Shown: positions 654 to 30,059 of the stretch, one piece after another
Position numbering within the stretch: the stretch's first letter is position 1
How the letters are laid out: each line of letters starts with the position of its first letter
DNA from: Octopus sinensis
Taxonomy: Eukaryota
Reading direction: 5' to 3'
Assembly (NCBI RefSeq): GCF_006345805.1
Contig: NC_043020.1
Span: 11,904,001 to 11,968,000 of the forward strand
DNA length: 64,000 nt
Program-made: the position numbers and the translations under genes
Notes under the pieces: generated by a model
Seen by the model: the letters and a program-made list of their open reading frames with translations, nothing else
What the model was told of the DNA's origin: nothing
The model's database searches: none

Positions 654-694
<41 letters not shown>

Positions 695-1318: not shown

Positions 1319-4300
1319 CTAACAAATCACACAAATAGCCAATCTTTTACGCCTTTGAGAATTCTTTGGAACAGCTTTCACACATTTTCGTTTTCGAAAC
1401 TCCATATTCTGTGTCGTATCTTTTTTCATTATTGAACTCGATCTTTTAACCACACTGTCCTTTCGATCTCTCGGTATAGAAAGTGACTTTCGAGCCACAG
1501 GTATTCTACTTTTTGTACTATCACTACCCTCGTATGCATCCGTCCAAGACAGTCTGTTCTTTTTTGGCGTAGTTATCTGTACCTCTTTACTCTTCTTACG
1601 AACATTTTCGTTCTCCTTAATGGGAGATTTCACCGATATTTCGGATTTCAAAGAAGACTTCTTCGGAATGTTTTCAAACAAAACTTCATCTCTTTGAGAA
1701 ATTTCCCCAATCGAAAACCGTATGGTAGACGAACTTCTGTTGAATATATAATCACTGGAACGTGTTTGTGTGCTTTCCCGTCGTACTGGGTTCGGTGGTA
1801 AAATAACACGCGATGATCTTTTTATAGACAAAGGTTTTTCTAAACAGAGTGCATTTCTAAATGATTTTCCTTTTTCCTGCTCTAATTCCCGGCGTCTTTC
1901 GTAAAGAAGCTCATCGAAACAACTTGATCGTCTTGCTGTATAAGGCGACCTGTATAATGACGACTTGGAACGTGATGAAACTATAGTTTCTGATCCCGAG
2001 TAGTTCCCAGATTTTGTTAAAGTGGACGGTTGTCGTCTGAACACGTGTGGTTGTGGTTCATCGGGTGAGGCTTCACCAGTACGTGTAGCAGGTACATAAG
2101 TCTGAACAGATACTTCGCTTACAGTTGGGGATCGTTCATCGGTTTGACAATTCTTTGTTACTCTAGTAATCATCTCAGTTTCCGGTGAAACAGGTATTGT
2201 TAGATCATCCACAGTGACTAATTCTTCAATAGGATAAGAAAGTATGGTTTGGATGGTTTGTTGCTCTAGCACCACATTTAAATATGTCAGAACTGTCTGT
2301 GTGGCTACATTTACTTGTAACATCGGAGTAGTCGTACTCGATATCGGTACTCCTGAGTAAAACGTCTTTAAAGCTAATTCATACTCTTTCTTAATATCAA
2401 ATATTTCATCACCATTTGCAATACCAGCCCAGTGAGCTCTGTTGTCGAGCATCCCATGATATAAAGGCTCCAATTCTTCATGCAGTTCTGACAAAGTTTT
2501 ATAAAGCAGTGTACTCACAAAATCAATAAAACCAACTTGCATTTGTGGTATTTCGCGTATACAATTGCGATCCATTAACGGCAACAGAGGAATATCATAA
2601 GCTCTTTCCATGTCTCCTTGTGTAAAGAATTCCTCAGCCATTAACATGACTGAGAATTTTTGAAAATCCCATGGCTTGGTAATAGCTGTAAGATCAGCTG
2701 CAGTCATTATCATACTAGTTAATAATTCAACGCTTTCTCGAGACTCAAAAGTTTTGTTACCGTCTTCGATGTGTTTTCTAAAAGTGTTTCTTTTCAAAAA
2801 ATAATCTACAAGGTCTGTAGCGAGGATTGCTTTCTCGATAAATTTGAGAGCCTTCTTATATTTTTCAGCTGAAACGTTTTTTAAAATATTTGTATCTTCA
2901 TTTTGCAATATCATGATACTTCGATTTATATGATGGTTTTCCAACACAGACGTATTGTAGAGAGTAGCAAGAGGCGATGCTGTATTCACTTGGAATGCAT
3001 TATTGGTTCCTCTGTGATCAATGTCATGAAACAAGCAAGCTATTAGCAGACATATTAGTTCAAATTCTTTGAAATATACTTGTAATCTACCGGTGGTCAA
3101 CATACAAAACATTGCTTGAGTAACATTGACAGCATGCTGCCAATTATGGTAGGTAAGAGGACGATAGTTTTTTTTCACAGTTAGTATCCATCTATACAAA
3201 GTAAACTTGGATATTTTCAATGAATTTAGAGCGTTCATTTCTATAAAGATAAGAGCAGTCAATATAACCTGTTCGTCTTCTGAGTATAAATAACTAATAA
3301 AATTGTAAGAGTAAAGTTTATAGTGACTTGTTGTGCGAATGTCTTGATGTTGCATGTCATAAGCTTCTTCTTCTTCGCAAGTCGTGTGAAACTGAAGCAA
3401 TTCGTATGCGAAATCTTGGCTGGATGTTATTTTATTGCAACTTTTGTACAAATGGTCGTTATAAATCGCCAGTCCGCAGAAAATGGCAAATGTCTCCAAC
3501 ATATTAATGTCATTTTCACTAAAGGTATTAATCGTCTTCCTGAGAAACATCATATAACCAATTACACTATCGCGATCACCGTGTATTGTCACGCAAATTA
3601 TCCAATTTAGTATATCACCATCCAATGTGATTTTGGTTTTCCATTTGGTTCTATCATGTAAATTAGTCACGCTAACTACATTCACCATGCTAGCACTATT
3701 CATATTTCGTTCAATAAATGATATGAACATTGGGTCTATAGGAGTATTTTTTACTTTAGTGTCTCCCTTCAAAAGTTGTAAAACGTTCGCTGACTCGGTC
3801 AGTTGACGTGCATCGTCTATATCATCACTTAAATAGATGCTGATATTATCACAGTCCAGCATTTTGATGGCGTATTGAAGAATTTCAGATACAAGTCTCT
3901 GGAAATCCTCCCCCGTTTTCAAAAAACACCGACCGAGTTTCAATAACATTTGATGCCGTATTGTTTCTCCTTGGGCAGCTTTAAAGAACTGATCATTGTT
4001 GAGATTCAGAGCACAAATTTTCGAGAAACATTCGAATAAGTTTTCATCACTAGAATCGAAATTATCTCCATCCAATTTATTCAATGCTTTAGCTACTCCT
4101 ATCACACGATCGTTTTTATCGAAAATTGGTAGCGAAAGAATCGATCTAATTTGACAGTTAGTCTCTCTCATATTTTCCGTAAGGCGTGAATCACGCCACG
4201 CTTCTTTAATATTTACTAAACATTCGTTTTCCGCTACGAAACCAACAATTCCTTCGCCAAATGGTAGATGAACCGTGTCTTCTTCTGTATTATCTATTTC

Positions 4301-4428
4301 GCCAGGTTGAGATCTAGTTGAAATATTGTTGGTTTCCGAAATAAGAAATCGATTTTTACCAACTCCTTGGACCAAAAGAAGGCTCGTTGCATGACAACGA
4401 AGCAAAATGCAGGCGTTTTGAAGAATTT
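1319..4428 (-). CDS. Intronless GAF-GAF cyclic-nucleotide phosphodiesterase, PDE5/6/11 class, type A copy 1 (5' end lost in assembly gap)
   Basis: Uninterrupted ORF with GAF-A (LNKLDGDNFDSSDE), GAF-B and catalytic motifs YHNWQH, HDIDHRG, LENHH, ATDL, TAADL..ITKPW, EFFTQGD, MQVGFIDFV; ends KRLAICVIC (CaaX). Near-identical to 22126-25235. Confidence 0.92.
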
Positions 4429-4528
4429 NNNNNNNNNNNNNNNNNNNNNNNNNNNNNNNNNNNNNNNNNNNNNNNNNNNNNNNNNNNNNNNNNNNNNNNN
4501 NNNNNNNNNNNNNNNNNNNNNNNNNNNN
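4429..4528. other. Assembly gap (100 N)
   Basis: Run of exactly 100 N; sequence left of it matches A2 up to ~25235, sequence right of it is unrelated. Confidence 1.
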
Positions 4529-4787
4529 CATTAAAGAGCAACATTAAATCGTTGGAGGGTGTGTGTGAGAGTGTGTGTATGTGTGTGTGAGAGTGTGTGT
4601 GTGAGTGTGTGTATGTGAGAGTGTGTGTATGTATGTGTACGTGTGTGAGAGTGTGTGCATGTCTGTGTGTGAGTGTGTAATTTTAATATTTCTATTATTG
4701 AAAACAAGTGGATGTATTCCACCGTAACTAGGTAAATAGAATCTTCGAACGGAGACGGTCAGTAGCGACACCTGCAGGTCTGACTAC

Positions 4788-4830
4788 GCTGCATTGAGAA
4801 GGGGCAACAACCCTGAAACATGTCTGTAGC
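4788..4830 (+). ncRNA. Minimal type I hammerhead ribozyme motif (U3-A8 variant)
   Basis: GCTGCA-TTGAGAA-GGGG caacaa CCCT-GAAA-CATGT-C-TGTAGC: helix I 6 bp, helix II 4 bp, palindromic helix III ACATGT, GUC cleavage triplet, C3U/G8A covariation. Confidence 0.6.
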
Positions 4831-5062
4831 TGTCGGACTAGCAGGTTGAAGCGGCTGACCTCCCCTGTTCGAAGGTTAATAATGGACGCAGTTTGTGTGT
4901 CAAGTAGCTAGCTTGAGGCGATGGCTTCATGGAGCTAATCAGCGACAGCTTTATTCTTATTTTTAAGAATGCCATATTAGTATGGCGATAACTATTATAT
5001 ATAATATATATATATACATGTATATGTATATACACACATGTATATATATATATATATAATAT

Positions 5063-5117
<55 letters not shown>

Positions 5118-5671
5118 AGATTAATCAGCCGAAATTGCTAAGATGATCTGGTTCTTGACTGTTGACTGAGGGCTTCGAATGTCCCGTCCTGTGGTTCTTG
5201 TGTCGTCTCTGTGGTGTTTCATGTTCTTGTCCATGTCTGTAATTATTTTTACTGTTTACCTATATATATATATACATATATATATTTATTTATTTATGTA
5301 TACATACATACATACATACATACACACACTCATATATAGATGTGTGTATGCATGTACATATAATTCTGTATAAACATATACACTCACACATATATTCACA
5401 ATGAAGGGAGACATACACACTTATATATATTATATTTTATTATAATATAGTATATGAAATACATATGTTCGCATCGTTTTTGTTTATATAGGTTCTTACG
5501 TTTGAAGCTGACATCGTTACAAGCAAATAAATAGTCAATCTATTTTTCTCTCGTGTTCTTGAAATACTAAATAACTGAATAATTTCGTGAAAGGCTTACA
5601 TAATCCTTTGATTTGTATTCTTTATCTTTCTTTGAGTAAGTAAAGTAATTGTTCTCTCTTTTGCTGGGAAA

Positions 5672-8600
5672 CTAGAATATCATGCACATTTTGCTTTTTA
5701 AAACGGTTAGTCTTTGAGGAGGGTTTGGTTTCGCAGTGATTTTCGCGCATTTCCGTTGTCGATTATCGTTGTTCAAATTTGGATTTTTTAACTTCAAGTC
5801 TGCTTGCGGTTTAAAACCTTCAGTGTTTTCATTTCCTTCCGTGCTCTTAGGTTTTTCTGAGAGATTCTCTGGGATTCTGTAAGATTCTGTGTTTCCCTGT
5901 GTTTTTCTGTAAGATTCTGTGTTTCCCTGTGTTTTTCTGTCAGATTCTGTGTTTTTCTGTGTTTTTCTGTCAGATTCTGTGTTTTCCGGTGTGTTTCTGT
6001 CAGATTCTGTGTTTTCCTGTGTTTTTCTGTCAGACGATGCTTTTGAAAAACTTCCCCTTACAGTATATTGAGAACTAATTTCCGAGATGGTTTCGTCTGA
6101 TGTCATGCTTTTGATGCTTTTGTTATATTCGGGTTCTGAAGATGATAGTTTTTGCCGTACTGGTGGTTGAAAAACACGACTTATTCTTTTGAATGGTTGG
6201 GTGGTTCATCAGGTAAGGCATTCAGAGCCTGACTTCCTCGTCGGCTTTGTGATAATTCGCTACGTTTGTTCTCAGCAACTTCATCGATCCAACTAGTTCG
6301 TCTTTGCCGGTTGATTGGAGGCAAAGGCTGAGTTGGTTGTACATGATTACTGTAAGCTTTTCTCCGTAAAGATAACTTATCTTGTCCAATGTTAGATTCT
6401 TCTAGTGTTTCTAAAGATATCACTGGTTGTTCGTGTGGCATTGTAATCGGTAAGTGCTCTGATTCTCTCAAAGAAGGCCTTTCTGTTTGAGTTATTGCCG
6501 AAAACACTTTCAGAAGTCGAGGTTCAGTTTGACTATCCGCTGTTTTTGTCTCAACATTGTTCAAAGATGGTTTGGTAGTTTTTTGTTGACATATATCTAT
6601 TGGGATTGAAATATCAGTCTGAGTAACCTTTTGCTCTTGATTAAATGTGAAAAGAGTTTGGGTCGAAACACCCGTGTCTCCTATATCTTCGACTGTCATA
6701 GCACTATCCAGCGAAATGTTATATAAAACTAATTGGAATTCTCTATCAACATCAAATTTTTCCTCACCATTTGCAATATGAGACCAATGAGCTCTGTTTT
6801 CGAGCATCCCATCGTAAAGAGGTTTTAATTCCTCATGCACCTGATGAAGAAGTTTGTAAAGTAATGTACACACAAAATCAATAAAACCAACTTGCATTTT
6901 GGGCAATTCGTATCTTTTACTGCGATCCATCATAGGCAACACAGGATATTTACATTGGGTTTCTATGTCACCTTGTTCGAAGAATTCGGCTGCGACCATA
7001 ATAGCAGTCTTTCTTTGAACCTCCCATGGCTTAGTAATAGCTGAAAGGTCACACGCAGTCATCATCATGCTAATAAGTAAATCAATGGTTTCTTGAGATG
7101 ACAACGTTTGGTCTTCGACTTCTATTTTGCGTTTGAAAATATTTCTTCTCTCAAAATATACTACGAGATCCGTGGCAATGATTGCTTTCTCGATTAATTT
7201 GAGACCCTTCTGATATTTTTCAGCTGGAACGTTTTTAAAAATATTTGTATCTTCAGTTTTTAATATCCTGATACTTTGATCTATATGATGGTTTTCCAAC
7301 ACAGACGTACTGTAAAGAGTAGCAAGAGGAGATGCCGTCTTCACTTGAAATGCATTATTATATCCTCTATGATCAAGATCATGACACAAAGCAGCCACCA
7401 ATAGGCAAATCTGCTCAAATTCTGTGAAATAATTTTGCAATTTGCCAGTAGTCAACATACAAAACATCATTTGAGTAACATTGATAGCATGACGCCAATT
7501 ATGATAGATGACAGGTCGATAGTTCTTTTTAACAGTTAGTATCCACCTATATAATAATTCTTTAGATATGTTGAGAACGGGCAATGTTTTGGCATCTAAA
7601 AATATGCGAACGACCAACAAAACAGTGTCATCCTCTGAATATATGAAGTCATTGAAATCGAATCGATAAATTTGGTAAAAACCTGAAGATAGTACCTCCA
7701 TACTTAAAAAATTATCTACAATTTCTGGATAACAAGTAATATAGTAGCTAAGTACTTTGTTTGTAAATTCTAGCTGTTCCAGCATATTTGATGCAGTTTC
7801 ATAAAGACGGCAATTATAGATAGCTAAACCGCAGAACATTGCAAATATTTCCATCATGCTGATATCATTTTGACTAAAAATATCCTTTGAATCTTTGATG
7901 TATACGATCCAACCAAGAAAATTCTTACCGGCATCTCTAATAGCTAAACAAAGCAACTGACTCTCAATCTTATATTCGAGATTTACGCTGTCAGACTCAG
8001 TAAGGTTCCCCGAAAGAAATAAATCGAAAGTATTTCCGCTGTTAATATTTTGTTCAATTGCTTTCTTTACTTTAGGTGTTATAATTTGTTCTGAGATATC
8101 TGAAGCTCCTTTCAATAAGTGAAAAACTTTGGAAGAATCAGTTGGGCAAAGGTTATCCTTTTTCGGATCAATCAAATAAATGCTGATACTCTCACACTGT
8201 AACATTTCCATGGCGAGTTTGGTAATTTCGGACATTAGTTTCGGTAGAGAATTTTGATATTTTAGTATACATCGATTCAGTCTTAGTAATAACTTGTGTT
8301 GTGTGAATTCCTCAAATGATCTTCGCAAGAAAGTATTGCTTCTTATACTAATGGCACAAAAGGACAAAAAACTCTCGCAGATCATTTGGTCTTCAGCATC
8401 AAAATAGAGATTATCTCTTTTATTTATTATTTGAGCGACAGCTAACAACTATCATCAGTGTCTAGAATTGGCATGCATAGAATGCTTTTGGTACGATGTC
8501 CAATTTTTTCGTCGACTTCACTTAAGAAACGAGGATCCTGATACACATCCTTAATATTTAAGAGATACTTATTATCAGCTACAAATCCTGCAATACCTTT

Positions 8601-9080
8601 TCCGAAGGGAATGCGTAGTGCGTTTTCTTCAGTATGAAGTGATTGTTCAAGAGTAGAGTCAGATGTAATATCAAACAGGGTCGACATTAGATATTGAACT
8701 TTTCCAACTCCTCGAACCATAAAAAGATTTGCTCTTTCACTGTGAAGTAAGATACATAAATTCTGAAGAACTTTATGACAGACAAAGTGTATATGAATCT
8801 CGGAATTAAGAACTTTCAATATTTCTTTGTACTTTTCATTTGTAGTAAGAGATTCGGCTTGGTTTCTTCGGGAAAGTTTCTTATGAAACACTATGTTTTG
8901 TAAGAAGTCTATAAAGGAATCTACTGCTTCTTCCTTTAATTTTTGATTGTATAATTCTTCCCCCAAGTCACCCAGTCCTCGCCTAGAGAGCCATGATCTA
9001 ACGAATACTGGATTCTTCGACAAGAAATCATCCACATCTTCTTCAGTAAGTCCTGCTTTCTCAGTAAATTTTGTTGCCAT
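5672..9080 (-). CDS. Intronless GAF-GAF phosphodiesterase type B copy 1 (~1136 aa after correcting two 1-bp deletions)
   Basis: ORF pieces 8442-9104, 6181-8448 and 5672-6106 join when compared with intact B2: AAA->AA near 8450 and TTT->TT near 6205. First ATG at 9080 (track start 9104 is TTG). YHNWRH, HDLDH, TACD, MQVGFIDFV intact; ends KSKMCMIF. Confidence 0.88.
5882..6031 (-). repeat. Coding 30-bp tandem repeat, 5 units (DRKTQENTES-like) in B1 tail
   Basis: Units such as GACAGAAAAACACAGGAAAACACAGAATCT, in frame. Confidence 0.9.
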
Positions 9081-9248
9081 GTTTCTTTTAAGTTTAATTT
9101 CCAAACAAGGTTCAATGATGCTTCTAAGTATTCTAGAAAACGTTTCATGAAAATTTCTGTATTTCTTGATTTTATTTTAAATCAGTAGTCTTCGCTACTT
9201 GAAATTAGAAGCAGGCAGCAGACATGCTTTCGTGGTTTGTCTTCGAAA

Positions 9249-9276
9249 TGACGCCGAATAATCTGTTGTGACGTAA
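9249..9276. promoter_or_regulatory. CRE-like pair upstream of B1 (TGACGCCG at 9249, TGACGTAA at 9269)
   Basis: TGACGTAA lies 189 bp upstream of the ATG; the same site is at 44797-44804 in B2. Confidence 0.45.
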
Positions 9277-9531
9277 GCAAAATTATGACAAAATATTCAA
9301 AATCGTCAAACGATCGAGTTGTAGATGACACACCTGCATAATTTGCCCTTGGCTTTATTAGTCTAAGACAAAACGATCCTCACTATGAATCATATTATGT
9401 TCTGTGTAGTTGATAATAATCAAATCGAAAGTACAGTTGATGCTGGATCGAACCAAACACACTACGAAGAACGTGAATACATTGTTGCTGGAATTTGGTT
9501 CAATTCTCCACAGTATCTGAAACTTCCCCGC

Positions 9532-11983
<2,452 letters not shown>

Positions 11984-11996
11984 TGACATATGAATA

Positions 11997-12206
11997 GGGT
12001 GCTGAAACGTTCCTGGCTTTAGGTAAAAGGAAATACAGGAGGATCAGTTAGTTATGATTTTATTGAACATATTTCCCTCTCAGATTCACACCCTTATTGC
12101 AGGGGTCCTTCAGTTTTTCTAATCCCGGTTAAAGAGTTCGGAAGGGTGGGCCTTCAACCAGGCCTTTCGCGATACACTTAAAGCCAAGAACTTTTCAGCA
12201 ACACCC
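11997..12206. mobile_element. Mariner-like MITE (~210 bp)
   Basis: Imperfect TIRs GGGTGCTGAAACGTTCCTGGCTTTA / TAAAGCCAAGAACTTTTCAGCAACACCC; no ORF. Confidence 0.65.
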
Positions 12207-12237
12207 AAGCCCTCATACACACACACACACGCGCGCA

Positions 12238-12285
<48 letters not shown>

Positions 12286-12311
12286 CATATACAGATAGAC
12301 AGACAGGCAGG

Positions 12312-12389
<78 letters not shown>

Positions 12390-12654
12390 CATATGTAGTC
12401 GAATACTATATTACTTTTTATGGTATATAACAGGTCAGAATGTCACCGTTGGTTTCGCGCTGGCTATTGCACTTGGTAATATTGAGTGTGACTTATGGAC
12501 AACTAACTGATTATATACATACATATATACATACATATATACATATAATCACAAAGAAGTATACATATATTCACGTACATATTATTTATTTACGTTTGCT
12601 TTTTCGTTTGCAGCTGTTTCAGCTAATACAAAATGTTTGTTGCTCAATAATTAC

Positions 12655-15600
12655 TTATGAAATCTTACACACATACTTTTCCATAAAATCGTCCTGCCTT
12701 TTGGTTCTCTTGCTTGTAAGAACTGGTTTACTCCGTGGAATTTTCTTTAAACATTTTCTTCTTCGACCTTGATTGAGGTCTTTCACTGCAACATTAGAAA
12801 TTTTTTCTCTTTCTTCTGCACTCATTGTAAATCTTTCCATGTCTAGCGTCTGTTTAGAGATCACAGGTCTCAAAGCTCTCATCTTTTGTTCAGGCGTTTC
12901 AAATGTTACACAAGCAGCTGTCCAGCTACCTATGTCTGACGAACAACCCATCGCTTCTTGTTCTGCTCCATCGAGATTCATACTTGTAGGGAATTTATTT
13001 GTTTTTAACCATGAGTCTGAAAATGTTTTGGGTGGTTCAAGGGACATGGCTCTACTAAGAAATCCAGGTTGGCTACAGAACTCACTATCACCATTTGAAA
13101 ATTTCACTTGCGTCCCTATATTAATTTTTCGGATTCTTTTACCGATTGGCCTTACCGTTACTGCGAGAAGTTTTTCCGCATAAAAACTTTTTATGGCGTT
13201 CGTTAAAGCACGAGATTCGGAGTAAGACATTGTAGACAAATCATCATCCGTTTGAGATGTCTTTTGACGTAGTCGTTGACTTTCTTCAGCGAGAACAAAA
13301 GTAGTCTGAGTAGACGATGTTGCCATTCCTAACGCAACATTTTCAGAGTGAATCCGTGATATTTTAGGTGTTACAATTTTGTGATATTTTGCTCCTTTCA
13401 AACTCATTTCTTCATTATAAAGAGTCTCAATTTCGGAATCAATGTCAAAAAACTCGATGCCTTCAGCTATATGGGCCCAGTGATTTCGATTCTCCAATGC
13501 CCCTTCATACAGATGAGTCAGATTAGCATCCATTTCAGATAAAACTTGAAAAATCGGAACACATTGAGTATCAAAATACTTCACTTCCATTTCAGGAAAT
13601 TTGTATCTATTTTCACGATCCATGAGATCTTCGACATCTTTCTGTAAAGTTTTTTCTTGATCCCCCTGCTCGAAAAATTCAGCTGCAATCTTAACTGCAG
13701 CATTTCTTTCAAACGACCATGGCTTTGTAGTAGCTGAAAGATCACAGGCTGCCATTATAACGGTTATTAATAAATCAATGCTTTCTTGACACTGAAAACC
13801 TTTGTCGCCCTTTTTGATTTCCTCTCTAAAACTTTTAATTACTTCATTAAGATCTTTTACATCTGTGCCAAGAATCGCTTTCTCGATAAATTTAAGACCG
13901 TGCTGATAATTTTCAGCCGAGAGATTCTGGAATATATTGGTTTCGGCGGTGTTTAACATCCTGATAGCTCTATCTATATGATGGTGTTCCAAGACGGACG
14001 TATCGTATAATGTAGTGAGCGGAGATGATATCTTCACTTGAAATTTATTATTTGTCCCTCTGTGGTCAAGATCATGCAATAAAGAAGCAATAAGGGAACA
14101 AATCTGTTCAAATTCTGTGAAATAATATTGTATTCGTGAACAGGTCAAAAAATAAAACATCATTTGAAATACCAGTACACCGTGGCGCCAGTTATGGAAA
14201 ATATTTGGGCGATAATTCTTCTTTGCTGTTAAAATAAACCTGTATAAAATATCAATCGGTAAATTTAATATGGTCAAAGCATTTTTATCAAGAAACACAC
14301 GAGCACACAACGAAACAATTTCATCATCTGTAAATACAGATTCAATAAAGGCATAGGAATATAATTGATACTCTTCAGCGGATCGTGGCTCGACTTTTAA
14401 GAAAGGTTCGATAAGTTTCCGGTCGCATGTGGTATGAAATGCCAGCACATCGTTCATTACTTCTCCCTGTGCCAACATCCTAACAGAACGTTCATATATG
14501 CGACAATTATGAATACTGATTCCACAAATCAATGCAAACGTCTCCATTAGGTTGATGTCACTTTGGTCGAAAACATCTTTGGAATGTCTTTCAAATATTA
14601 TGCAACCGACGACCTCACTTGTAGCATTTGTTATTGTCATACACAGTAGCCAACGGCCGACATCACCTTCAACAGTGATTAACCTCTCTTTTGATTCACC
14701 TTGTAATCGAATTATATCGATTATATTGATACTTTTTAAATTTCGGCCAATTGGTATTATATATTTCGGATCTAACGGAACTTCCTCCACTTCTTCTTCA
14801 TCTTTTAATAACTGGAAAACGTTAGACGATATCGTCGGAGAGGCCGCATCCATTCTGTTTTCTGTCAAACAAACAGAAATCTTGCTACAGTCTAACATAT
14901 CCATGGCATGTCGAAGAATTTCTGATATAAGCTTTCGAAAATTGATTTGCTCTTTCAGAACAAATTTGACAAGTTTTAGCAATAACTTGTGGCGTTTAAA
15001 TTCCACTTGTGATATTTCTAACAACCGTTCGTTGATTATACTGATTCCGCAAAACGACAAAAAGTTCTGAAATATAATTTCATCATTCGAATCGAAATAA
15101 CGATCATGTTTCTTATTCAATGCTTGAGCTACACCTATTACGACGTCATCTCTATCCTTAATTGGTACAGATAGAATACTTTTCGTACAGAACCCCGTTG
15201 ATTTATCAATCTCATGTAAAAAACGTTCGTCTTCGTAGGCATCTTTAATGTTCAATAGACAACTGTATTCAGCTACATATCCGACAATTCCTTTCCGAAA
15301 GGAATGCGAATGGCATTTTCTTCGTTGTGAATTGTATCCTCCATAACCGAGGTGGCTGTAACGTCAAAGAGCTTGGAAACTAAGTGTAGCTTTTTAGCAG
15401 TTCCATGTAACAGAAATAGGCTCGCTCTCTCACAATCGAGGATGATACAAGCATTTTGAAGAATTTTATGACACTGTTTGTCGACATTGACTTCGAAAAC
15501 AGTGTCTTTTACAAACTCTCTGTATATTTCATTCTCTGTCACTACTGAACTATACCCTCTTGATTTTGATTTCACCTCCTGTAATACTGTATCACTTGTA

Positions 15601-15758
15601 GTTGCACTATAACCGGTCTCTCCCGGTACTTTCAACGTGCATTTAAGGCTTTGCCTTTTGACGTCCACTGTAAAATGCCGAGATTGCCATTTGCGAACGA
15701 AATCTGGATTATTCTGTAAGAAATTTTCAACCTCATCTTGCTGTAAATCATCCATCAT
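12655..15758 (-). CDS. Intronless GAF-GAF phosphodiesterase type C (~1034 aa after correcting one 1-bp deletion), atypical active site
   Basis: 15273-15758 and 12655-15255 join at IPFG-KGIVG (GGAAAAGGA read as GGAAAGGA near 15297). ATG at 15758 is preceded by an in-frame TAA. Metal ligands HNWRH, HDLDH, AACD retained; invariant Q replaced (MEVKYFD); ends KYVCKIS. Confidence 0.88.
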
Positions 15759-15969
15759 TTACTGGTGTAGTATCAAAATCGAAACCAATTATAGTTTTGT
15801 TGATGCTGATAATGATGAGGATATTGACCATATTTTTCTTACCAGAATCATTTGTATGGCAATGATGTTCATATCTTTGTATCTAGCCGTTTAATCTACA
15901 TAAAACTGCATTCTTTACAATGCTCTACCAAATGCTTTTCCATCAAAAGAACGGCAATTTTTCTAAACA

Positions 15970-15997
15970 TGACGTCAATCTCTAATGTATGACATCA
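15970..15997. promoter_or_regulatory. Perfect CRE (TGACGTCA, 15970-15977) plus TGACATCA 20 bp away, upstream of PDE C
   Basis: Palindromic octamer 212 bp upstream of the ATG. Confidence 0.55.
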
Positions 15998-16934
15998 CAC
16001 TATTAGTTTAAATCATTTAGGTTAATTAAAAGGAAACTGCATCTACATGAAAAATAATCATTAAGTATTAAATTGTAGTGGCATTAAATACCTAATTAGA
16101 AGTACTTAAGCCGTGAAAAAAGAAATCTCTAAATCTCTCTTTAGAAATGGTTTTGGTCCACTTCTTGCAGTGACATTGTACTGAAGGAAGGTGGCAAATC
16201 AAGTGAAAAGCGAACTCAGGAACCGTTGCCTTCAACCAGTAAGGAAGAAGGAGCATGACAGAAGAATGAAAACGAAAGAAGCAGCGAATTTGAGACAGAG
16301 AAAATTGTGTTGGACGAAGAGAATGGTGAAAGATATCAGAGAAAGGTACCTAGAAAGAGAAATTTACGAAACTTCGTAGAATACGAAAAAAGTGTTGAAA
16401 TCGAAAAGAGAGTAACAAAGATGAAAAATGTTATCAGAGTGAAATTGGTAAACTGAGAAGGTAAGAAGGGCGTGCTACTGGAGAGAGAAAGAGGGGAGAG
16501 ATTAGTAGAACTGTTAGGGGAAAAAAAAAGAGTTGTAATATCACCACTTCAGTTTAGATACGACGAGTTGCCGCCTGTTGTAATTTTCGACGATCTTATG
16601 CAATATTTGTTGTAATTGTATGTTTAAGAAACAAAAAGATACATGACTGTAAAGTGAACTGTAATTAAAAAGAACAATAAAATGAAACTGCTTGTTTTGG
16701 GGGGCGAATAAGCCATTTCATCCTCAGTTTTTTTTATCATAGTCATAGTCCATTCGATATGTGTTTTATATGTACCCCAATGTCTTGTTTCGTCTGTCCT
16801 TGTTGTGTCCCCTGAGTACAAAGGTTATGTGCCTTCCCCATCTCTCTTTTTCCCTTTCTTCTCCTCCCCCTTCAACTAACCACGTGGAAGTGTTACGGGT
16901 GGGCTAATTAACGGAGCGACAAGCAGAATTATTT

Positions 16935-17450
16935 TAAGATTGGGCGGAATTCTTCTTCAAGCAAGCTATATAACTCCTCATAACTTTTTTTACTTTTTGG
17001 AATCTTCAGAAAATTTTTCTGAATTTGTGTTCTACGCACGGGAATTCATACGGTTATGATCTCCTAACAAAATTTTGTGTGTGTGTGTGTGTGACTTAAG
17101 GGATATTTGCTGTTATTTTTAGTACATCTCACAACCACTTCTTATCATCCTCGTTCGTTCACCACTCTGACGTATTGATGTTTTTCAAAATCTTCCTTCC
17201 CATAAACATAAGGGTCTATTGATGGAATTTAACCCCAAAATTCGGACTGTCCATATTTTAAACTGTGATGTAAAACGAAATATTTCGAAATTATAATAAA
17301 AAAAAAAATCGAAAAATTAATTTTAAAAATGTATGTATGAATTCCCGTGTGTAGAACACAAATATGCAACAAATATTCTGAACATTCCAAAAAATAAAAA
17401 AGTTATGAAGGGTTATATGACGTGTTTAAGTCAGAATTCCACCAAATATT
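16935..17450. mobile_element. Degenerate foldback/MITE with ~115-bp imperfect inverted arms
   Basis: ATTTGTGTTCTACGCACGGGAATTCATAC (~17020) is inverted at ~17335-17365; the match extends outward to GGAATTC motifs at ~16950 and ~17440. Confidence 0.6.
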
Positions 17451-17494
17451 GTCAAAGCTTCTCCATTCCATTGGCATGAAGATACAAACAGAAA

Positions 17495-17936
17495 ATACTC
17501 TTTTACTTGTTTCAGTCATTTGACTTCGGCCATGCTGGAGCACCGCCTCTTTGTCGAACAAATCGACCCCAGGACTTATTCTTTGGAAGCCTAGTACTTA
17601 TTCTATCGGTCTCTTTTGCCGAACCGCTAAGTTACGGGGACTACGGGGACGTAAACACACCAGCATCGTTTGTCAAGCGATGTTGGGGGAACAAACACAG
17701 ACACACAAACATATACATACTCATACATACACACACATACACACACACACACATACACACACACATATACATACATATGACGGGCTTCTTTCAGTTTCCA
17801 TCTACCAAATCTACTCCCAAGTCTTTGGTCGGCCCGAGGCTATAGTAGAAGACACTTGCCCAAGGTGCCACGCAGTGGGACTGAACCCGGAACCATGTAG
17901 TTCGTAAGCAAGCTACTTACCACACAGCCACTCCTA
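17495..17936 (-). mobile_element. tRNA-derived SINE (head TAGGAGTGGCTGTGTGGTAAGTAGC family)
   Basis: Same family at 42424-42824(+), 54645-55018(-), partial at 30470-30680 and ~48880-48940. Confidence 0.85.
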
Positions 17937-18311
17937 CATTTACGCCTACTATTAATATATATTAAAACTATTAAAGGAGCACTGTATTTTCCAACGTATA
18001 AGGCACACTTTTGCATTAGGCATACCCCTATTTTACAAGCATAGTTTATAGCAAAAACAAATGTAGTACCTTTCATCGTATACATACATAAAGTTATTTT
18101 AAAGTAGTTTTGGAAGGAAAATATATGATTCTGTACATATAAATCATATAAATACAATATCGAATTAGATACATTTTAGAATGAAATTTAGAATAATTGT
18201 GATGCATTTTAGAATAAAATAAATTCGTTTTATACGCCGGCAAATACGGCTGTTAGTTCAGCATTACCTCGGACTAGCCGTGTTACTAAGCTGTTCTTTC
18301 GATATATTAAC

Positions 18312-18430
18312 ACTAGCTGACCCTGAGCCGTCAAAAATGACGGCTAATTGTAGCATTTTATATATAAATAAGGTAGAAAATAGGGTACCTAATAGTCACA
18401 GAAACAAACACTCACATACTTCCTTTATAC
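18312..18430 (+). mobile_element. Very short Helentron/DINE-1-like non-autonomous element
   Basis: Starts ACTAGCTGACCC, perfect 8-bp hairpin AGCCGTCA-AAAA-TGACGGCT at 18326-18345, ends CAAACACTCACATACTTCCTTTATA. Confidence 0.5.
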
Positions 18431-18629
18431 ATGCACACACATACACACATATACTCAGAGTTGATTTTTTTCACCCCTTCTCTCGATATTCATCATTCAC
18501 CCTTTCCTTTCTCCATTGCTATTACTTTCCCTCGCTACTTCTCCTTCACTGAATTACTATTTTCTCTGCCCCCACCACTTTCTCCTACTTCGTCCTACTC
18601 CTACTCTGTGACGTTCGACAAATATATAT

Positions 18630-18665
<36 letters not shown>

Positions 18666-19149
18666 CGTTTAAATATTTGTTGTGCAAGATTTTTTATGTG
18701 AAGTCGAGTGTTGAAACAGATATTGTTATATTTCGGAATGGTCATTTTGCCAGTTTAGCCAATAAAAACACACGCACTATATATTTGGTGTTACTTTGCT
18801 TCAGTGTTATTTATTTTTTACATTAATCTTAATCTTATTTCGGCCAGAATTCTTTCGTCACACTCCTGTGACCGCATCAGTGGTCCTTTGTTTTCTTCTC
18901 ACTTATTTGTGTCTCCCCTTACTAACCGTCAGCCATTTTGTATTTCTATTGTATGTCTTGATTTGCGCATGCTTATATATCTATGTGCGTTAATGTTTAT
19001 TTAGTGTGTGTATGTGGGGGATGCCTGTAATATTTGTATCTTCTGTTTATATATGTTCATGTAATTTGTAATTTTATATGTTCATGTAATTTGTATTTTG
19101 TATTTTTTTGTTTTTGTTTTTCCCATTTTTAATGCATTTTTTTGCTATT

Positions 19150-19229
19150 ATATAAGGGAAGTAACTCTCTAAAAATGCTTATATAGTTATTTCCCTTACA
19201 AACCCGAGCAACGCCGGGCGATACTGCTA

Positions 19230-19230
<1 letters not shown>
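19150..19230 (-). mobile_element. 5' end of Helentron/DINE-1-like element (same family as 30751-32335)
   Basis: Reverse complement reads ACTAGCAGTATCGCCCGGCGTTGCTCGGGTTTGTAAGGGAAATAACTAT. Confidence 0.7.
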
Positions 19231-19271
<41 letters not shown>

Positions 19272-19610
19272 CCATGACAGATCGTTAGCCACTACACACA
19301 TTTTTTTCTCTCTTTTTTTTCTCTCCTTGTTTCTCTCCTTCTTTTTTCTGAGTCCCTTTCTGTAGAAGAACGTAGGCTCGAAACGTCAAAGACATTACCA
19401 ATCTTCTCGAGCGTTAAATATGACCACCTCAGTCATTAGACTGTGGTCATGCTATGCTGAGACACCGCCTTGATGGCACAACCTCTTTCTTAATTGTGGA
19501 AAGGAGACTTCGGCTGTTCATTTTTCATCCGCTTCACCTAGCTACAAAGCCGACTAACCTTCTTCAAGACCATAAATCTTAAATACACTCCTCCCACATA
19601 TAGACAATAT

Positions 19611-19917
19611 CACGTGATCACGTGACCGACCAGACCAACAGATGCTGTTACACATCGCTGGTCACAATGCATTCGCATTGTTTTTAGCCTTCGAATGACG
19701 CCACCTCGCTGGCTAAGCAAGCAGGCCAACAGAAGAAAGAGTGGGAGAAAGTGTGGTGAAAGAGTACAGCAGGGATCACCACCCCCTGCCGGAGCCTCGT
19801 GGAGCTTTTAGGTGTTTTCGCTCAATAAACACTCACAACGCCCGGTCTTGGAATCGAAACCGCGATCCGACGACTGCGAGTCCGCTGCCCTAGCCACTGG
19901 GCCATTGCACCTCCACT
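19611..19917 (-). mobile_element. tRNA-derived SINE with 13-bp target-site duplication
   Basis: Head GAGGTGCAATGGCCCAGTGGCTAGGGCAGCGGACTC; ATATAGACAATAT at 19598-19610 and 19918-19930. Confidence 0.85.
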
Positions 19918-20427
19918 ATATAGACAATATAGACGAGTTAAATACACTCTTCCCACATATGTCGTACAAAACCACTTGAATTCGTTCTATTTTCATTTGG
20001 CAAACTAATTCTGTGAAGGGTATTGATCGTGGAGTCACAAAATATACACATGCCGTGGATTTAAATTTCTTCCAAGTGTTCTTAATTGCAAAATTTGTAT
20101 ATTCATGTGAAGAAAGCGTTTTTTTATAATGATATAATGTACACATTAAACAAATTCAAAAAAAATTCGTTAGAAACAGCTGTAATAAATTGACACCTAT
20201 CCATCATTTGTTATATAAATATATGTTGGACTCATATTAAACTCTGTTGGACTTTTGGATTTTACTCAAAGGATATTGAAATAATACACATATATACCAT
20301 TATGCCTATAAAACGGATTTTTGAACTCAATAACCATACATATCTTATATCTATTTTCTTTCCTCCACCTCACTCTCTATTTATATCACATCGAAACTAA
20401 CTTTGACTTAACTTTTCCTCTCACACC

Positions 20428-20482
20428 GTCTCCGATGAAGGGATATTATTATTAATAAATATCGTAGAAACAGCTGTAAGAC
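20428..20482 (+). ncRNA. Hammerhead-like motif, core variant CCGATGA
   Basis: GTCT-CCGATGA-..GATATT..AATATC..-GAAAC-AGCT-GTA-AGAC; palindromic helix III ACAGCTGT. Confidence 0.4.
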
Positions 20483-20549
20483 CTTCTATCTATAAATGCT
20501 CTAATATCAATACAGCCTTGGGGTTTTTTTTTATCTCATTACGCAAAAA

Positions 20550-20607
<58 letters not shown>

Positions 20608-21205
20608 AGAGTAACCACATAATTGCAAAACAAGGTGGAGAAATAGTACTCAAATACCAGAAGTAGAGTAATATGCTTTATCAAAAAGCAGCAAAAATAT
20701 CACAAAAAACTGTTACTCAGAGTTTCGCCTTCTCGTTCGTCGGACAGTTTTGTTTAGAATGGAACGAAAATAAGGTTATAAGCAAACATATACAATTAGT
20801 TTAATACATACACATTTGCAAATGGTTTTGTTTCATTGGTCCTTTTAACTAACGGTATATAGGGAGAGAGTCTTCGTATGTGAGTGAATCTTACGTTGTG
20901 TGTATATGTGTGTGTATGTGTGTGTGTGGTGTGTTTCTGTCTGTTAACATAAAATACATCGTTACCACCTCCAAACAGCGTCTCGCTTAACCTGACATTG
21001 GAACCCCACCACTGGGTGAAGATTTGGGCTCTACAGTTCGTGCCGTCCAATCGCATGTTGGCACATGCCAACCATCGATTAAATATATATATATATATGT
21101 ATGTATGTATGTATGTACATATATGTATGTATATATACACGTATATATTTTATTTATATTGTTATATGATTGAACGCCACGCATCCATTTCCAAGTAAGT
21201 TTAAT

Positions 21206-21244
<39 letters not shown>

Positions 21245-21357
21245 TATATATAGTTATCAGTAACAATGAAGGGTGAAATTAATTAATTTGGAATAATTAT
21301 CAATTACACCAAGGGTGAAATTAATTAATTTGGAATAATTATCAATTATATAGCCGA

Positions 21358-21439
<82 letters not shown>

Positions 21440-21453
<14 letters not shown>

Positions 21454-24400
21454 GTATTATGTATGTATGTATGTATGTATGTATGTATGTATGTATATTT
21501 TTATGTATGTATGTATGTATGTATGTATGTATACAGGGTGAGAGTGAATGTTAGGTTGTGTGTGTGGTCTGTGTTTCTGTCTGTCGGCAGTAAAATACAT
21601 TGTTACCAGCTCGTAGCTTCGAGATTTCGAGAGTGTGATTATGTTTTTTGAATGACATTGTCGGGTAGGTGTGAGAGGCCAGATATGGTCGGTTTAGATT
21701 TAAACATGAAACACAGCAGAATATTTGAGTTTGATTTGCTGGTTTAAATGCCAAAGTTTGAAACCAGAAACTTAAATATTTGCTAATCAATTTATTTAAT
21801 TTAATTACTCTCTCAACGGCATATTTTAATATCTTTTGTGAGGGCGATGAGGTGGCACAATCGTTAGTATCGGAATATATGCCTCACCATATTTGTCCCT
21901 CGTCTATACCTTCTGAAGTCAAATCCCGCCGAGGTTAACTTTACGTTACATTTCTTCGGAGTACGAGTCAAGGAATGGATTCAATGATTTCGACTAATCC
22001 CGCATCCTCTCCTCAAAAATGTCGGCTTTGTGCATAAAGAAGAAAACATTTTAATGCCTTTGTTATTTCATTTTTATTTTCGTTACTAGAACACCAGTTG
22101 TTCCTCCGGCCCATATAATGGTAGTCTAACAAACCACACAAATAACCAATCTTTTACGCCTTTGAGAATTCTTTGGAACAGCTTTCACACATTTTCGTTT
22201 TCGAAACTCCATATTCTGTGTCGTATCTTTTTTCATTATTGAACTCGATCTTTTAAACACACTGTCCTTTCGATCTCTCAGTATAGAAAGTGACTTTCGA
22301 GCCACAGGTATTCTACTTTTTGTACTATCACTACCCTCGTATGCATCCGTCCAAGACAGTCTGTTCTTTTTTGGCGTAGTTATCTGTACCTCTTTACTCT
22401 TCTTACGAACATTTTCGTTCTCCTTAATGGGAGATTTCACCGATATTTCGGATTTCAAAGAAGACTTCTTCGGAATGTTTTCAAACAAAACTTCATCTCT
22501 TTGAGAAATTTCCCCAATCGAAAACCGTATGGTAGACGAACTTCTGTTGAATATATAATCACTGGAACGTGTTTGTGTGCTTTCCCGTCGTACTGGGTTC
22601 GGTGGTAAAATAACACGCGATGATCTTTTTATAGACAAAGGTTTTTCTAAACAGAGTGCATTTCTAAATGATTTTCCTTTTTCCTGCTCTAATTCCCGGC
22701 GTCTTTCGTAAAGAAGCTCATCGAAACAACTTGATCGTCTTGCTGTATAAGGCGACCTGTATAATGACGACTTGGAACGTGATGAAACTATAGTTTCTGA
22801 TCCCGAGTAGTTCCCAGATTTTGTTAAAGTGGACGGTTGTCGTCTGAATACGTGTGGTTGTGGTTCATCGGGTGAGGCTTCACCTGTACGTGTAGCAGGT
22901 ACATAAGTCTGAACAGATACTTCGCTTACAGTTGGGGATCGTTCATCGGTTTGACAATTCTTTGTTACTCTAGTAATCATCTCAGTTTCCGGTGAAACAG
23001 GTATTGTTAGATCATCCACAGTGACTAATTCTTCAATAGGATAAGAAAGTATGGTTTGGATGGTTTGTTGCTCTAGCACCACATTTAAATATGTTAGAAC
23101 TGTCTGTGTGGCTACATTTACTTGTAACATCGGAGTAGTCGTACTCGATATCGGTACTCCTGAGTAAAACGTCTTTAAAGCTAATTCATACTCTTTCTTA
23201 ATATCAAATATTTCATCACCATTTGCAATACCAGCCCAGTGAGCTCTGTTGTCGAGCATCCCATGATATAAAGGCTCCAATTCTTCATGCAGTTCTGACA
23301 AAGTTTTATAAAGCAGTGTACTCACAAAATCAATAAAACCAACTTGCATTTGTGGTATTTCGCGTATACAATTGCGATCCATTAACGGCAACAGAGGAAT
23401 ATCATAAGCTCTTTCCATGTCTCCTTGTGTAAAGAATTCCTCAGCCATTAACATGACTGAGAATTTTTGAAAATCCCATGGCTTGGTAATAGCTGTAAGA
23501 TCAGCTGCAGTCATTATCATACTAGTTAATAATTCAACGCTTTCTCGAGACTCAAAAGTTTTGTTACCGTCTTCGATGTGTTTTCTAAAAGTGTTTCTTT
23601 TCAAAAAATAATCTACAAGGTCTGTAGCGAGGATTGCTTTCTCGATAAATTTGAGAGCCTTCTTATATTTTTCAGCTGAAACGTTTTTTAAAATATTTGT
23701 ATCTTCATTTTGCAATATCATGATACTTCGATTTATATGATGGTTTTCCAACACAGACGTATTGTAGAGAGTAGCAAGAGGCGATGCTGTATTCACTTGG
23801 AATGCATTATTGGTTCCTCTGTGATCAATGTCATGAAACAAGCAAGCTATTAGCAGACATATTAGTTCAAATTCTTTGAAATATACTTGTAATCTACCGG
23901 TGGTCAACATACAAAACATTGCTTGAGTAACATTGACAGCATGCTGCCAATTATGGTAGGTAAGAGGACGATAGTTTTTTTTCACAGTTAGTATCCATCT
24001 ATACAAAGTAAACTTGGATATTTTCAATGAATTTAGAGCGTTCATTTCTATAAAGATAAGAGCAGTCAATATAACCTGTTCGTCTTCTGAGTATAAATAA
24101 CTAATAAAATTGTAAGAGTAAAGTTTATAGTGACTTGTTGTGCGAATGTCTTGATGTTGCATGTCATAAGCTTCTTCTTCTTCGCAAGTCGTGTGAAACT
24201 GAAGCAATTCGTATGCGAAATCTTGGCTGGATGTTATTTTATTGCAACTTTTGTACAAATGGTCGTTATAAATCGCCAGTCCGCAGAAAATGGCAAATGT
24301 CTCCAACATATTAATGTCATTTTCACTAAAGGTATTAATCGTCTTCCTGAGAAACATCATATAACCAATTACACTATCGCGATCACCGTGTATTGTCACG

Positions 24401-25235
24401 CAAATTATCCAATTTAGTATATCACCATCCAATGTGATTTTGGTTTTCCATTTGGTTCTATCATGTAAATTAGTCACGCTAACTACATTCACCATGCTAG
24501 CACTATTCATATTTCGTTCAATAAATGATATGAACATTGGGTCTATAGGAGTATTTTTTACTTTAGTGTCTCCCTTCAAAAGTTGTAAAACGTTCGCTGA
24601 CTCGGTCAGTTGACGTGCATCGTCTATATCATCACTTAAATAGATGCTGATATTATCACAGTCCAGCATTTTGATGGCGTATTGAAGAATTTCAGATACA
24701 AGTCTCTGGAAATCCTCCCCCGTTTTCAAAAAACACCGACCGAGTTTCAATAACATTTGATGCCGTATTGTTTCTCCTTGGGCAGCTTTAAAGAACTGAT
24801 CATTGTTGAGATTCAGAGCACAAATTTTCGAGAAACATTCGAATAAGTTTTCATCACTAGAATCGAAATTATCTCCATCCAATTTATTCAATGCTTTAGC
24901 TACTCCTATCACACGATCGTTTTTATCGAAAATTGGTAGCGAAAGAATCGATCTAATTTGACAGTTAGTCTCTCTCATATTTTCCGTAAGGCGTGAATCA
25001 CGCCACGCTTCTTTAATATTTACTAAACATTCGTTTTCCGCTACGAAACCAACAATTCCTTCGCCAAATGGTAGATGAACCGTGTCTTCTTCTGTATTAT
25101 CTATTTCGCCAGGTTGAGATCTAGTTGAAATATTGTTGGTTTCCGAAATAAGAAATCGATTTTTACCAACTCCTTGGACCAAAAGAAGGCTCGTTGCATG
25201 ACAACGAAGCAAAATGCAGGCGTTTTGAAGAATTT
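21440..25235. repeat. Direct segmental duplication of PDE type A (partner ~670-4428)
   Basis: Near-identical from the (TATG)n/CAGGGTGAGAGTG flank to the gap edge. Confidence 0.92.
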
Positions 25236-25534: not shown

Positions 25535-25617
25535 TATTTCTTTAGTCTATTATTGAAGCAGCTGACTATATTCTATCGACACGAAGAAACGAAGTCTCTT
25601 TTACTTGCGTATTCCTT

Positions 25618-25714
<97 letters not shown>

Positions 25715-25730
25715 GTTCATACACTCACAG

Positions 25731-25782
<52 letters not shown>

Positions 25783-26859: not shown

Positions 26860-26965
<106 letters not shown>

Positions 26966-26988
26966 CCTATCTACCTATCTATCTATCT

Positions 26989-29921: not shown

Positions 29922-29952
29922 TATCTATCTATCTATCTATCTATCTATCTAC

Positions 29953-30007
<55 letters not shown>

Positions 30008-30008
30008 C

Positions 30009-30059
<51 letters not shown>

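Follow-up and report, generated by a model that had tools for sequence, protein, structure and literature searches.

We found that a gene in a 64 kb stretch of the Octopus sinensis genome (assembly GCA_006345805.1, chromosome CM016882.1; this whole stretch of analysed DNA is called the window below) encodes glutamate at the position of a glutamine that is regarded as invariant across class I cyclic-nucleotide phosphodiesterases (PDEs) and that anchors both substrates and nearly all PDE drugs. Judged by its profile match, fold, metal pocket, GAF domains and C-terminal CaaX box, this gene, termed type C, is a class I PDE by descent and architecture that lacks both this residue (Gln817 in human PDE5A) and Gln775, the residue that positions it. 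Sequence comparisons within Octopus indicated with high confidence that type C is a real, conserved and selected variant. The reading that we favour, with modest confidence, is that type C is a still-active cyclic-nucleotide PDE whose purine recognition has been weakened or re-tuned.

Substitution of the purine pocket

Read on the minus strand, the main open frame of type C contains ...RYKFPEMEVKYFDTQCVPIF... and, around the glutamate, ...RYKFPEMEVKYFDTQ.... The sequence-only reading of this DNA had observed that C has MEVKYFDTQ where the neighbouring PDE genes A and B have MQVGFIDFV, with FHN for YHN and TDV for TDL. All of these differences were found: MQVGFIDFV is present in A (1319-4531 and 22126-25335) and in B (6181-8448 and 44969-48463), a further neighbour, D, has AQVDFIDFV, and FHN and TDV are encoded in C by TTC at 14197-14199 and by a Val codon at 13858-13860. 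The substituted positions of the pocket are the following.

13585..13587, minus strand: GAA (Glu), position of the invariant Gln, PDE5A Q817
13708..13710, minus strand: GAA (Glu), PDE5A Q775, the residue positioning Q817
14197..14199, minus strand: TTC (Phe), PDE5A Y612, a Q-pocket residue
13573..13578, minus strand: TAT TTT (Tyr-Phe), PDE5A F820-I821, the stacking clamp residue and its neighbour
13687..13689, minus strand: ATT (Ile), PDE5A V782, a Q-pocket residue
13858..13860, minus strand: GTA (Val), PDE5A L725 (TDL to TDV)

When type C was compared with all PDB chains using phmmer, human PDE5A was the best match (E = 1.5e-64; catalytic-domain structures 7FAQ, 1T9S and 2H42), and 'pemevkyfdtqc' of C aligned with 'psmqvgfidaic' of PDE5A without gaps. 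The Glu therefore stands at Q817 and the Tyr at F820, as had been proposed. In the same alignment 'kpwsfern' was paired with 'kpwpiqqr', so that C has a Glu at PDE5 Q775 too, the residue whose hydrogen bond to Q817 holds the latter in its orientation. It has been stated, in agreement with the sequence-only reading, that the invariant Gln hydrogen-bonds the base and that the Phe stacks on it (PMC13095499 and PMC10536424); the Gln is kept even in a Giardia PDE (PMC5617230), and Q775 and Q817 have both been implicated in substrate specificity (PMC10367598). The core 'Q pocket' of PDE5 consists of Gln817, Phe820, Val782 and Tyr612 (PMC10536424), and all four residues were changed in C (Q817E, F820Y, V782I and Y612F), together with I821F and L725V. 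The clamp changes F820Y and V782I are conservative, keeping aromatic and aliphatic character, respectively. The Q775E partner change and the full change of the Q pocket, as well as the GAF-A frameshift and the intact orthologues and paralogues considered below (P0123, P0001 and P0122), go beyond what had been noted before.

Codon 819 (13579-13581) is AAG (Lys) in O. sinensis and O. vulgaris and GAG (Glu) in O. bimaculoides. A-to-I editing is extensive in coleoids and would make AAG read as GAG, so the genomic residue at 819, or elsewhere in the pocket, may differ from the residue in the protein. Editing of this kind is unable to make a Gln codon from GAA, for which GGA and GAG are the possible products.

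Preservation of the metal centre and fold

The catalytic domain and the metal-binding motifs of type C were located as follows.

13504..14199, minus strand: PDEase_I catalytic domain (Pfam PF00233), E = 1.1e-67, profile positions 1-236 of 238
14182..14196, minus strand: HNWRH, with H613 and H617 of the metal pocket, kept
14062..14076, minus strand: HDLDH, with H653, D654 and H657 of the metal pocket, kept (HD at 14071-14076)
13978..13989, minus strand: EHHH, with E682 and H685 of the metal pocket, kept
13741..13743, minus strand: D764 of the metal pocket (in AACD), kept

The metal ligands in HNWRH, HD and AACD had been described as remaining in a domain free of stop codons, and this held for the whole of 13504-14199. 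All eight strictly conserved metal-pocket residues listed in PMC5617230 (PDE5 H613, H617, H653, D654, H657, E682, H685 and D764) were intact in the type C genes of the window, O. vulgaris and O. bimaculoides, and the general-acid His was intact in every type C copy. Structure prediction, which had been suggested as a check, confirmed with confidence a PDE-like fold, the 16-helix fold of class I PDEs: the AlphaFold model of type C had a predicted local distance difference test score (pLDDT) of 87.9 and template-modelling (TM) scores of 0.87-0.88 to PDE6C, PDE5 and PDE2, and the top Foldseek matches were to PDE6C (TM 0.88).

Type C shares with human PDE5A, its best sequence match among solved structures (model TM 0.87), the arrangement of GAF-A and GAF-B with a catalytic domain, the metal ligands and the general-acid His. 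It differs from PDE5A by Q817E, Q775E, Y612F, V782I, F820Y, I821F, L725V, I768T/A/V and G819K/E, by a CaaX box that PDE5 does not have, and by an intronless gene. With PDE6 and the prenylated invertebrate 'Pde6' group type C has in common the GAF-GAF-catalytic layout and the C-terminal CaaX box, in line with the Foldseek result; PDE6, however, keeps the invariant Gln, and the octopus genes form a lineage-specific intronless array. Type C descends from the GAF-containing PDE5/6/11 group and, through its CaaX box, is nearest to the prenylated PDE6-type enzymes of invertebrates.

Conservation of the glutamate in Octopus

The DNA of type C was compared among O. vulgaris C1 (L001), O. vulgaris C2 (L004), the second O. 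sinensis copy (L003) and O. bimaculoides C (L002). The sequence-only reading had proposed that orthologues be checked for a conserved Glu, and this was what we found: codon 817 was GAA in all type C DNA inspected, four gene copies from three species (among them O. sinensis C2, which is the window copy, O. vulgaris C1 and O. bimaculoides C), and it was CAA in five Gln-bearing paralogues, namely A, B, D and, in two species, the sibling gene described below. When 107 PDE catalytic domains (PDE5/6/11-type) collected by a homologue search were aligned, F612, V725, E775, I782, E817, Y820 and F821 were present in 7/7 type C proteins, and Gln817 was present in 96/96 of the other sequences with a residue at that position. 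Gln was missing from position 775 in 17 sequences, comprising the 7 type C proteins with Glu and others with Ser (4), Ala (3) or a gap (3).

The residues flanking the Glu differ between species (MEVKYFDTQ compared to IEVEYFDSL), indicating that the Glu was held while its surroundings drifted. A single base-call error had been judged unlikely from the change of several neighbouring residues, a judgement that is strengthened by the same codon in four assemblies of three species. When the type C protein was used as a query, the best match was an O. vulgaris protein at 96% identity (P0001), followed by O. bimaculoides at 77%; beyond Octopus the matches were molluscs and insects at 35-40%, named 'cGMP-specific PDE' or 'phosphodiesterase 6'. 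Type C is a real, selectively maintained paralogue type that is so far found only in Octopus.

A Gln-bearing sibling and the origin of type C

The nearest paralogue of type C, termed the sibling (P0003, P0126 and P0128), adjoins C1 in O. vulgaris and is arranged head-to-head with C in O. bimaculoides; its accessions are CAI9740187.1 in O. vulgaris (P0003), XP_029650745.1 in O. sinensis and XP_014788894.2 in O. bimaculoides. This chromosomal neighbour resembles C in its CaaX type (CTIS) and has 61% amino-acid identity to it in the catalytic domain. Unlike C, it retains Y612, L725, Q775, V782, Q817, F820 and I821, and it has another tail. DNA identity between C and the sibling was 95-99% in the first 1.1 kb, 67-80% in the catalytic domain and <50% in the tail. 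Synonymous divergence was 0-0.12 across GAF-B, increased along the linker and reached 0.5-0.8 or more within the catalytic domain; for the N-terminal half, window 14200-15758 was compared with L001:3164-4300, and the conversion boundary was near the linker between GAF-B and the catalytic domain. The low N-terminal and high catalytic divergence indicated that gene conversion homogenises the regulatory half while an old, distinct catalytic half is preserved. The catalytic half of C is about five times older, as a split from the sibling, than the split of the species compared.

The amino-acid differences between the two genes were polarised with A, B, D and human PDE5, which assigned 21 stem changes to C and 10 to the sibling (p = 0.07). 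Changes on the C stem affected 4/12 named pocket residues compared to 17/292 residues elsewhere (p = 0.006), and 6/20 compared to 15/284 with a wider pocket list (p = 0.001); the residue list was taken from PMC10536424 and picked after the data had been seen, so this enrichment is supportive and is no proof.

We also considered whether the window C gene was a deletion chimera of sibling and C, as its first 700 nt are nearer to the O. vulgaris sibling than to C1. This was rejected on finding a second O. vulgaris locus (P0123/L004), which shares this N-terminus and is the true orthologue of the window gene; the chimera-like N-terminal pattern is gene conversion among paralogues, with no deletion. 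In the O. vulgaris assembly the sibling (L001:3164-6492) has a 1-nt deletion (GGGGTT-TGT) and is split across two gene models, and the protein CAI9740187.1 reads through.

Selection on type C

The ratio of non-synonymous to synonymous divergence (dN/dS; pN/pS for the uncorrected proportions) was obtained from Nei-Gojobori (NG86) counts and evaluated by Fisher tests, with O. bimaculoides paired with either O. vulgaris or O. sinensis.

Type C (Glu): catalytic dN/dS 0.55-0.65 (Fisher p = 0.017 and 0.05); tail pN/pS 2.0-2.4 (dN/dS 1.7-2.5)
Sibling (Gln): catalytic dN/dS 0.41-0.55; tail 1.2-1.5 (pN/pS 1.15)
B (Gln): catalytic dN/dS 0.58; tail pN/pS 0.82
D (Gln): catalytic dN/dS 0.48; tail pN/pS 1.04

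A dN/dS near 1 across C had been named as the sign of decay, and the catalytic domain did not behave in this way. Its ratio of 0.55-0.65 is below 1 and in the range of the Gln-bearing paralogues (0.41-0.58), indicating that the C gene type is not decaying; when the end of GAF-B was included with the catalytic domain the ratio was 0.49-0.57 (p = 0.002-0.006). The array as a whole is fast-evolving, with C no more relaxed than its canonical relatives. Furthermore, the two lineages differ at 195 nucleotides over 2 kb and the type C frame has nevertheless stayed open in each of them; all indels were multiples of three. When the same number of substitutions was placed randomly, a mean of 7.2 stops resulted and the frame was stop-free in 1/5000 trials. 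Between O. sinensis and O. vulgaris the catalytic domains differ by 4 non-synonymous and 2 synonymous changes, a number that has no power for selection.

The tail of C (12658-13503) evolves very fast (pN/pS 2.0-2.4, Fisher p = 0.002-0.013), and positive selection on it is possible. The sibling, B and D likewise have disordered, fast-evolving tails; what stays fixed, at the extreme end, is the CaaX box with a basic RRRKC motif.

Function of type C

The same substitution has been engineered in another PDE. Human PDE9A2 Q453E is folded and active, with a Km for cyclic GMP (cGMP) that rises from 0.113 to 2.8 uM (25-fold) and a halved kcat (Hou et al. 2011, PMC3069055), and the ratio of its efficiencies for cGMP and cyclic AMP (cAMP) falls from 337 to 29, a ~12-fold lower selectivity (PMC3069055). 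Glu453 is 3.2 A from its natural partner Glu406, and the latter was proposed by the authors to be protonated (PMC3069055; PDB 3QI3 and 3QI4). Type C and this mutant are alike in carrying the Gln-to-Glu change at the invariant position, facing a second Glu. They differ in that the latter is a laboratory point mutant in another PDE family, whereas type C has at least six further pocket changes.

After the split from the Gln-bearing sibling, the Q pocket was rebuilt through Q817E and the partner change Q775E, plus Y612F, V782I, F820Y, I821F and L725V, and the two-metal hydrolytic centre was left untouched during this rebuilding. The Glu817 carboxylate could accept hydrogen bonds from guanine N1-H or adenine N6-H2 and would be unable to donate one to guanine O6 unless protonated, from which a much higher Km for cGMP and a weaker discrimination between cGMP and cAMP are predicted. 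A second carboxylate at 775 beside Glu817 should raise one of the two pKa values, and two facing carboxylates may thereby bring about pH dependence. The changes Y612F, F820Y, I821F, V782I and L725V may compensate for the altered contact or redirect binding. With a regulatory half kept near-identical to that of the sibling by gene conversion, one GAF input would be coupled to two different catalytic pockets.

Several other explanations have to be weighed. It is exceedingly improbable that the Glu codon arose through faulty sequencing or assembly: the general indel error rate of the O. sinensis assembly is all that speaks for it, and the same substitution, with six co-varying neighbours, recurs in four independent assemblies of three species. 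We also consider it very improbable that type C as a whole is decaying and that the Glu is one neutral change among many. Such decay would fit a dN/dS that is merely moderately below 1, a tail pN/pS of 2.0-2.4 and a family that is recently expanded and redundant, but since the duplication (dS ~0.7) an open frame of ~1030 codons has persisted at both O. vulgaris loci, in O. sinensis C1 and in O. bimaculoides, with indels in frame only, the CaaX box retained, the Glu and its exact codon fixed in all copies, and a catalytic omega equal to that of the Gln-bearing paralogues.

The sequence-only reading had offered altered specificity, a pseudo-enzyme and a cyclic-nucleotide sensor side by side. This either-or is too broad to be settled by sequence, and within it an active enzyme with changed purine recognition is favoured over a dead one by the intact metal ligands and the PDE9 Q453E precedent (PMC3069055). 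It is unlikely, in our estimation, that type C is a pseudo-enzyme or regulatory subunit, one that binds nucleotide poorly or not at all at its catalytic site and acts via its GAF domains or by pairing with the sibling in a heterodimer. GAF-PDEs dimerise via their N-terminal halves, and the 95-99% DNA identity of this half to the sibling would preserve the dimer interface. Loss of both the Gln and its partner, the change of all four Q-pocket residues, the variation of additional pocket residues among type C copies and a metal-residue retention that is statistically uncompelling point in the same direction. They are set against eight metal-pocket residues and a general-acid His intact in every copy, a stacking residue that is conservatively Tyr and not lost, a catalytic-domain constraint equal to that of the canonical paralogues, and the activity that PDE9 keeps after the same Q-to-E change (PMC3069055).

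The reading of type C as an active enzyme with changed purine recognition also has to accommodate observations that weigh against it, among them the post hoc pocket list mentioned above. The window copy of type C is itself frameshifted, and transcript-derived contigs encoding type C were not found, type C being known from genomic sequence and gene models. Retention of all eight metal residues is weak evidence for catalysis, its chance p being ~0.2 at ~19% change per site on the C lineage (a rough estimate). A dN/dS of ~0.6 is weak constraint, with p = 0.05 in one comparison, and the type C copies still differ from one another at pocket residues 768, 786, 816, 819 and 823, which could reflect relaxed constraint on ligand binding. 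Finally, Glu406 of PDE9, which we take from residue numbering to be nearer to PDE5 I768 than to Q775, is off the Q775 sequence position, and the Glu-Glu analogy is therefore one of role and not of position.

A bolder form of the active-enzyme reading, which we regard as a long shot, is that a natural Glu-Glu (carboxyl-carboxylate) base sensor has replaced Gln-Gln. Type C would then be a proton-gated, pH-dependent dual-specificity PDE or an enzyme for a cyclic nucleotide other than cGMP or cAMP, forming a heterodimer with the Gln-bearing sibling, with GAF compatibility maintained via gene conversion. If true, the Glu-Glu/Gln heterodimer would be an invertebrate parallel to PDE6 alpha-beta, with two chemically different active sites.

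Searches of the open-access literature turned up neither a natural class I PDE without this Gln nor an octopus PDE expansion. The role of the 'glutamine switch' in discriminating cGMP from cAMP has been debated for twenty years via laboratory mutants. Type C would add a naturally evolved, selectively maintained PDE with Glu at the invariant residue and at its positioning partner, an exception to a family-defining residue, and the pair of C and sibling, with their shared regulatory half, may serve PDE biochemistry as a natural experiment on what the Gln contributes and whether other pocket changes compensate for it. Octopuses carry a fast-evolving, intronless expansion of PDE5/6-type genes.

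Gene layout and the GAF-A frameshift

The window copy of type C, O. sinensis C2, shows as two open reading frames because of a 1-nt deletion inside GAF-A, where one G is absent in TTCGGGAAAGG.

12655..15255, minus strand: main reading frame of type C, with 866 codons and a stop codon, covering the end of GAF-A and all of GAF-B, the catalytic domain, the disordered tail and the CaaX box
15273..15758, minus strand: N-terminal reading frame of type C (161 aa), covering the N-terminus and the first half of GAF-A and not in phase with the main frame
15295..15296, minus strand: frameshift site, GG compared to GGG in O. vulgaris C1, C2 and the sibling (TTCGG-AAAGG), common to L003
12658..12669, minus strand: CaaX box CKIS, a predicted prenylation signal of the PDE6 kind; O. 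bimaculoides has CTIS

The N-terminal frame aligns to residues 1-154 of the orthologues, and the main frame agrees in every residue with the corresponding stretch of gene model XP_029650737.1 (P0121). This NCBI model bridges the frameshift with an artificial-looking intron of ~190 nt and 21 out-of-frame residues, an arrangement that does not appear biological. Pfam GAF matches revealed tandem GAF-A and GAF-B N-terminal to the catalytic domain in type C and all paralogues, and the type C GAF-A has an NKx5Fx3DE motif (NKKHDRYFDSNDE). GAF-A, interrupted in the window copy, is intact in the orthologues P0123 and P0001. O. sinensis C1 (XP_029650744.1, 1025 aa) is an intact type C gene, and so are O. 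vulgaris C1 and O. vulgaris C2 (P0123/L004, 1033 aa), the latter being the true orthologue of the window copy, from which 21 substitutions in 3.1 kb separate it. Between the window C gene and the second O. sinensis copy, L003, there are 2 nt of difference.

The deletion in the window copy could stem from a fault in the assembly, or it could mark that this one copy was inactivated very recently. Compared with O. vulgaris, the C and B' genes show six 1-nt indels, each of them a base missing from O. sinensis within a short homopolymer run, and 3/6 are private to one copy. Such a pattern is typical of errors left in the long-read consensus of duplicated regions, which short-read polishing fails to correct. 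The GG is common to both O. sinensis copies, which argues for a genuine mutation. It is quite possible, if somewhat doubtful, that C2 is a young pseudogene in which translation ends after 161 codons, the species relying on the intact C1. The window and L003 copies of O. sinensis, 99.4% identical and distinct at other sites, both carry the deletion; XP_029650737.1 needs the artificial-looking intron and the out-of-frame residues to bridge it; and the neighbouring B' also has frame-breaking 1-nt deletions. An error in the assembly is supported by the signature of unpolished long reads just described, by the intact orthologue P0123 with just 21 substitutions, and by 3.1 kb of sequence without further stops or indels.

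The PDE gene array of the window

The window, with a G+C content of ~36% (AT-rich) and G+C-rich retrotransposon islands, contains six long intron-free reading frames, each with GAF, GAF, PDEase_I and a terminal CaaX box. These genes are a tandem array of intronless GAF-GAF-PDE genes of the PDE5/PDE6 type.

1319-4531, minus strand: gene A, abutting a 100-N gap (4429-4528)
6181-9104, minus strand: gene B', frame-broken
12655-15758, minus strand: gene C (type C), the PDE without the Gln
22126-25335, minus strand: gene A'
33469-36630, plus strand: gene D
44969-48463, plus strand: gene B

The coding regions of the array are single-exon and 3.1-3.5 kb long, and the orthologues of O. vulgaris and O. 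bimaculoides are built likewise (gene span equal to coding-sequence length); in the limpet Patella caerulea, a homologue spans 64 kb for 968 aa. The comparison suggests that the family originated by retrocopy, with later tandem expansion. The octopus PDE5/6-type genes are a fast-evolving, intronless, lineage-specific expansion.

The 21-kb A-C-B' block (window 12291-25746 and 4529-12393) is present again on the same chromosome at L003 (CM016882.1:11,977,172-12,000,272) with 99.3-99.4% identity. Within the window, 656-4428 is repeated directly at 21458-25235 (99.0%) and 5875-9913 is repeated in inverted orientation at 44160-48200 (98.6%), and the 100-N scaffold gap at 4429-4528 lies exactly at a repeat edge. 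These repeats are segmental duplications of very recent date or else haplotype copies that the assembly placed one after the other. The B' gene (6181-9104) is broken into frames 8442-9104 and 6181-8448 with a premature end, owing to 1-nt homopolymer deletions relative to its O. vulgaris orthologue, which is intact (1136 aa). One of these deletions is private to the window and one is common to L003, and two further ones were found in L003 alone.

Unusual active-site residues of their own were also seen in genes that keep the Gln: D (33469-36630) has M816A, G819D, A767V, I768A, F786Y, HDLEH and LEHRH, and the A type (A', 22126-25335) has HNWQH and V782M. The CaaX ends are CVIC or CVVC in A, CMIF in B and CVIS in D. 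B-type tails contain a 30-nt tandem repeat (7.3 copies at 48043-48260 and 5.3 copies at 5875-6034) that encodes a TESDRKTQGN-like decapeptide repeat. Remnants of non-LTR (long terminal repeat) retrotransposons, with 45-50% G+C, lie between the PDE genes at 9495-11000, 26821-30539 and 56036-59123, and their reading frames encode reverse transcriptase (RVT_1), endonuclease (Exo_endo_phos) and zf-RVT domains. O. vulgaris carries the 9534-11485 element at its orthologous site as well.

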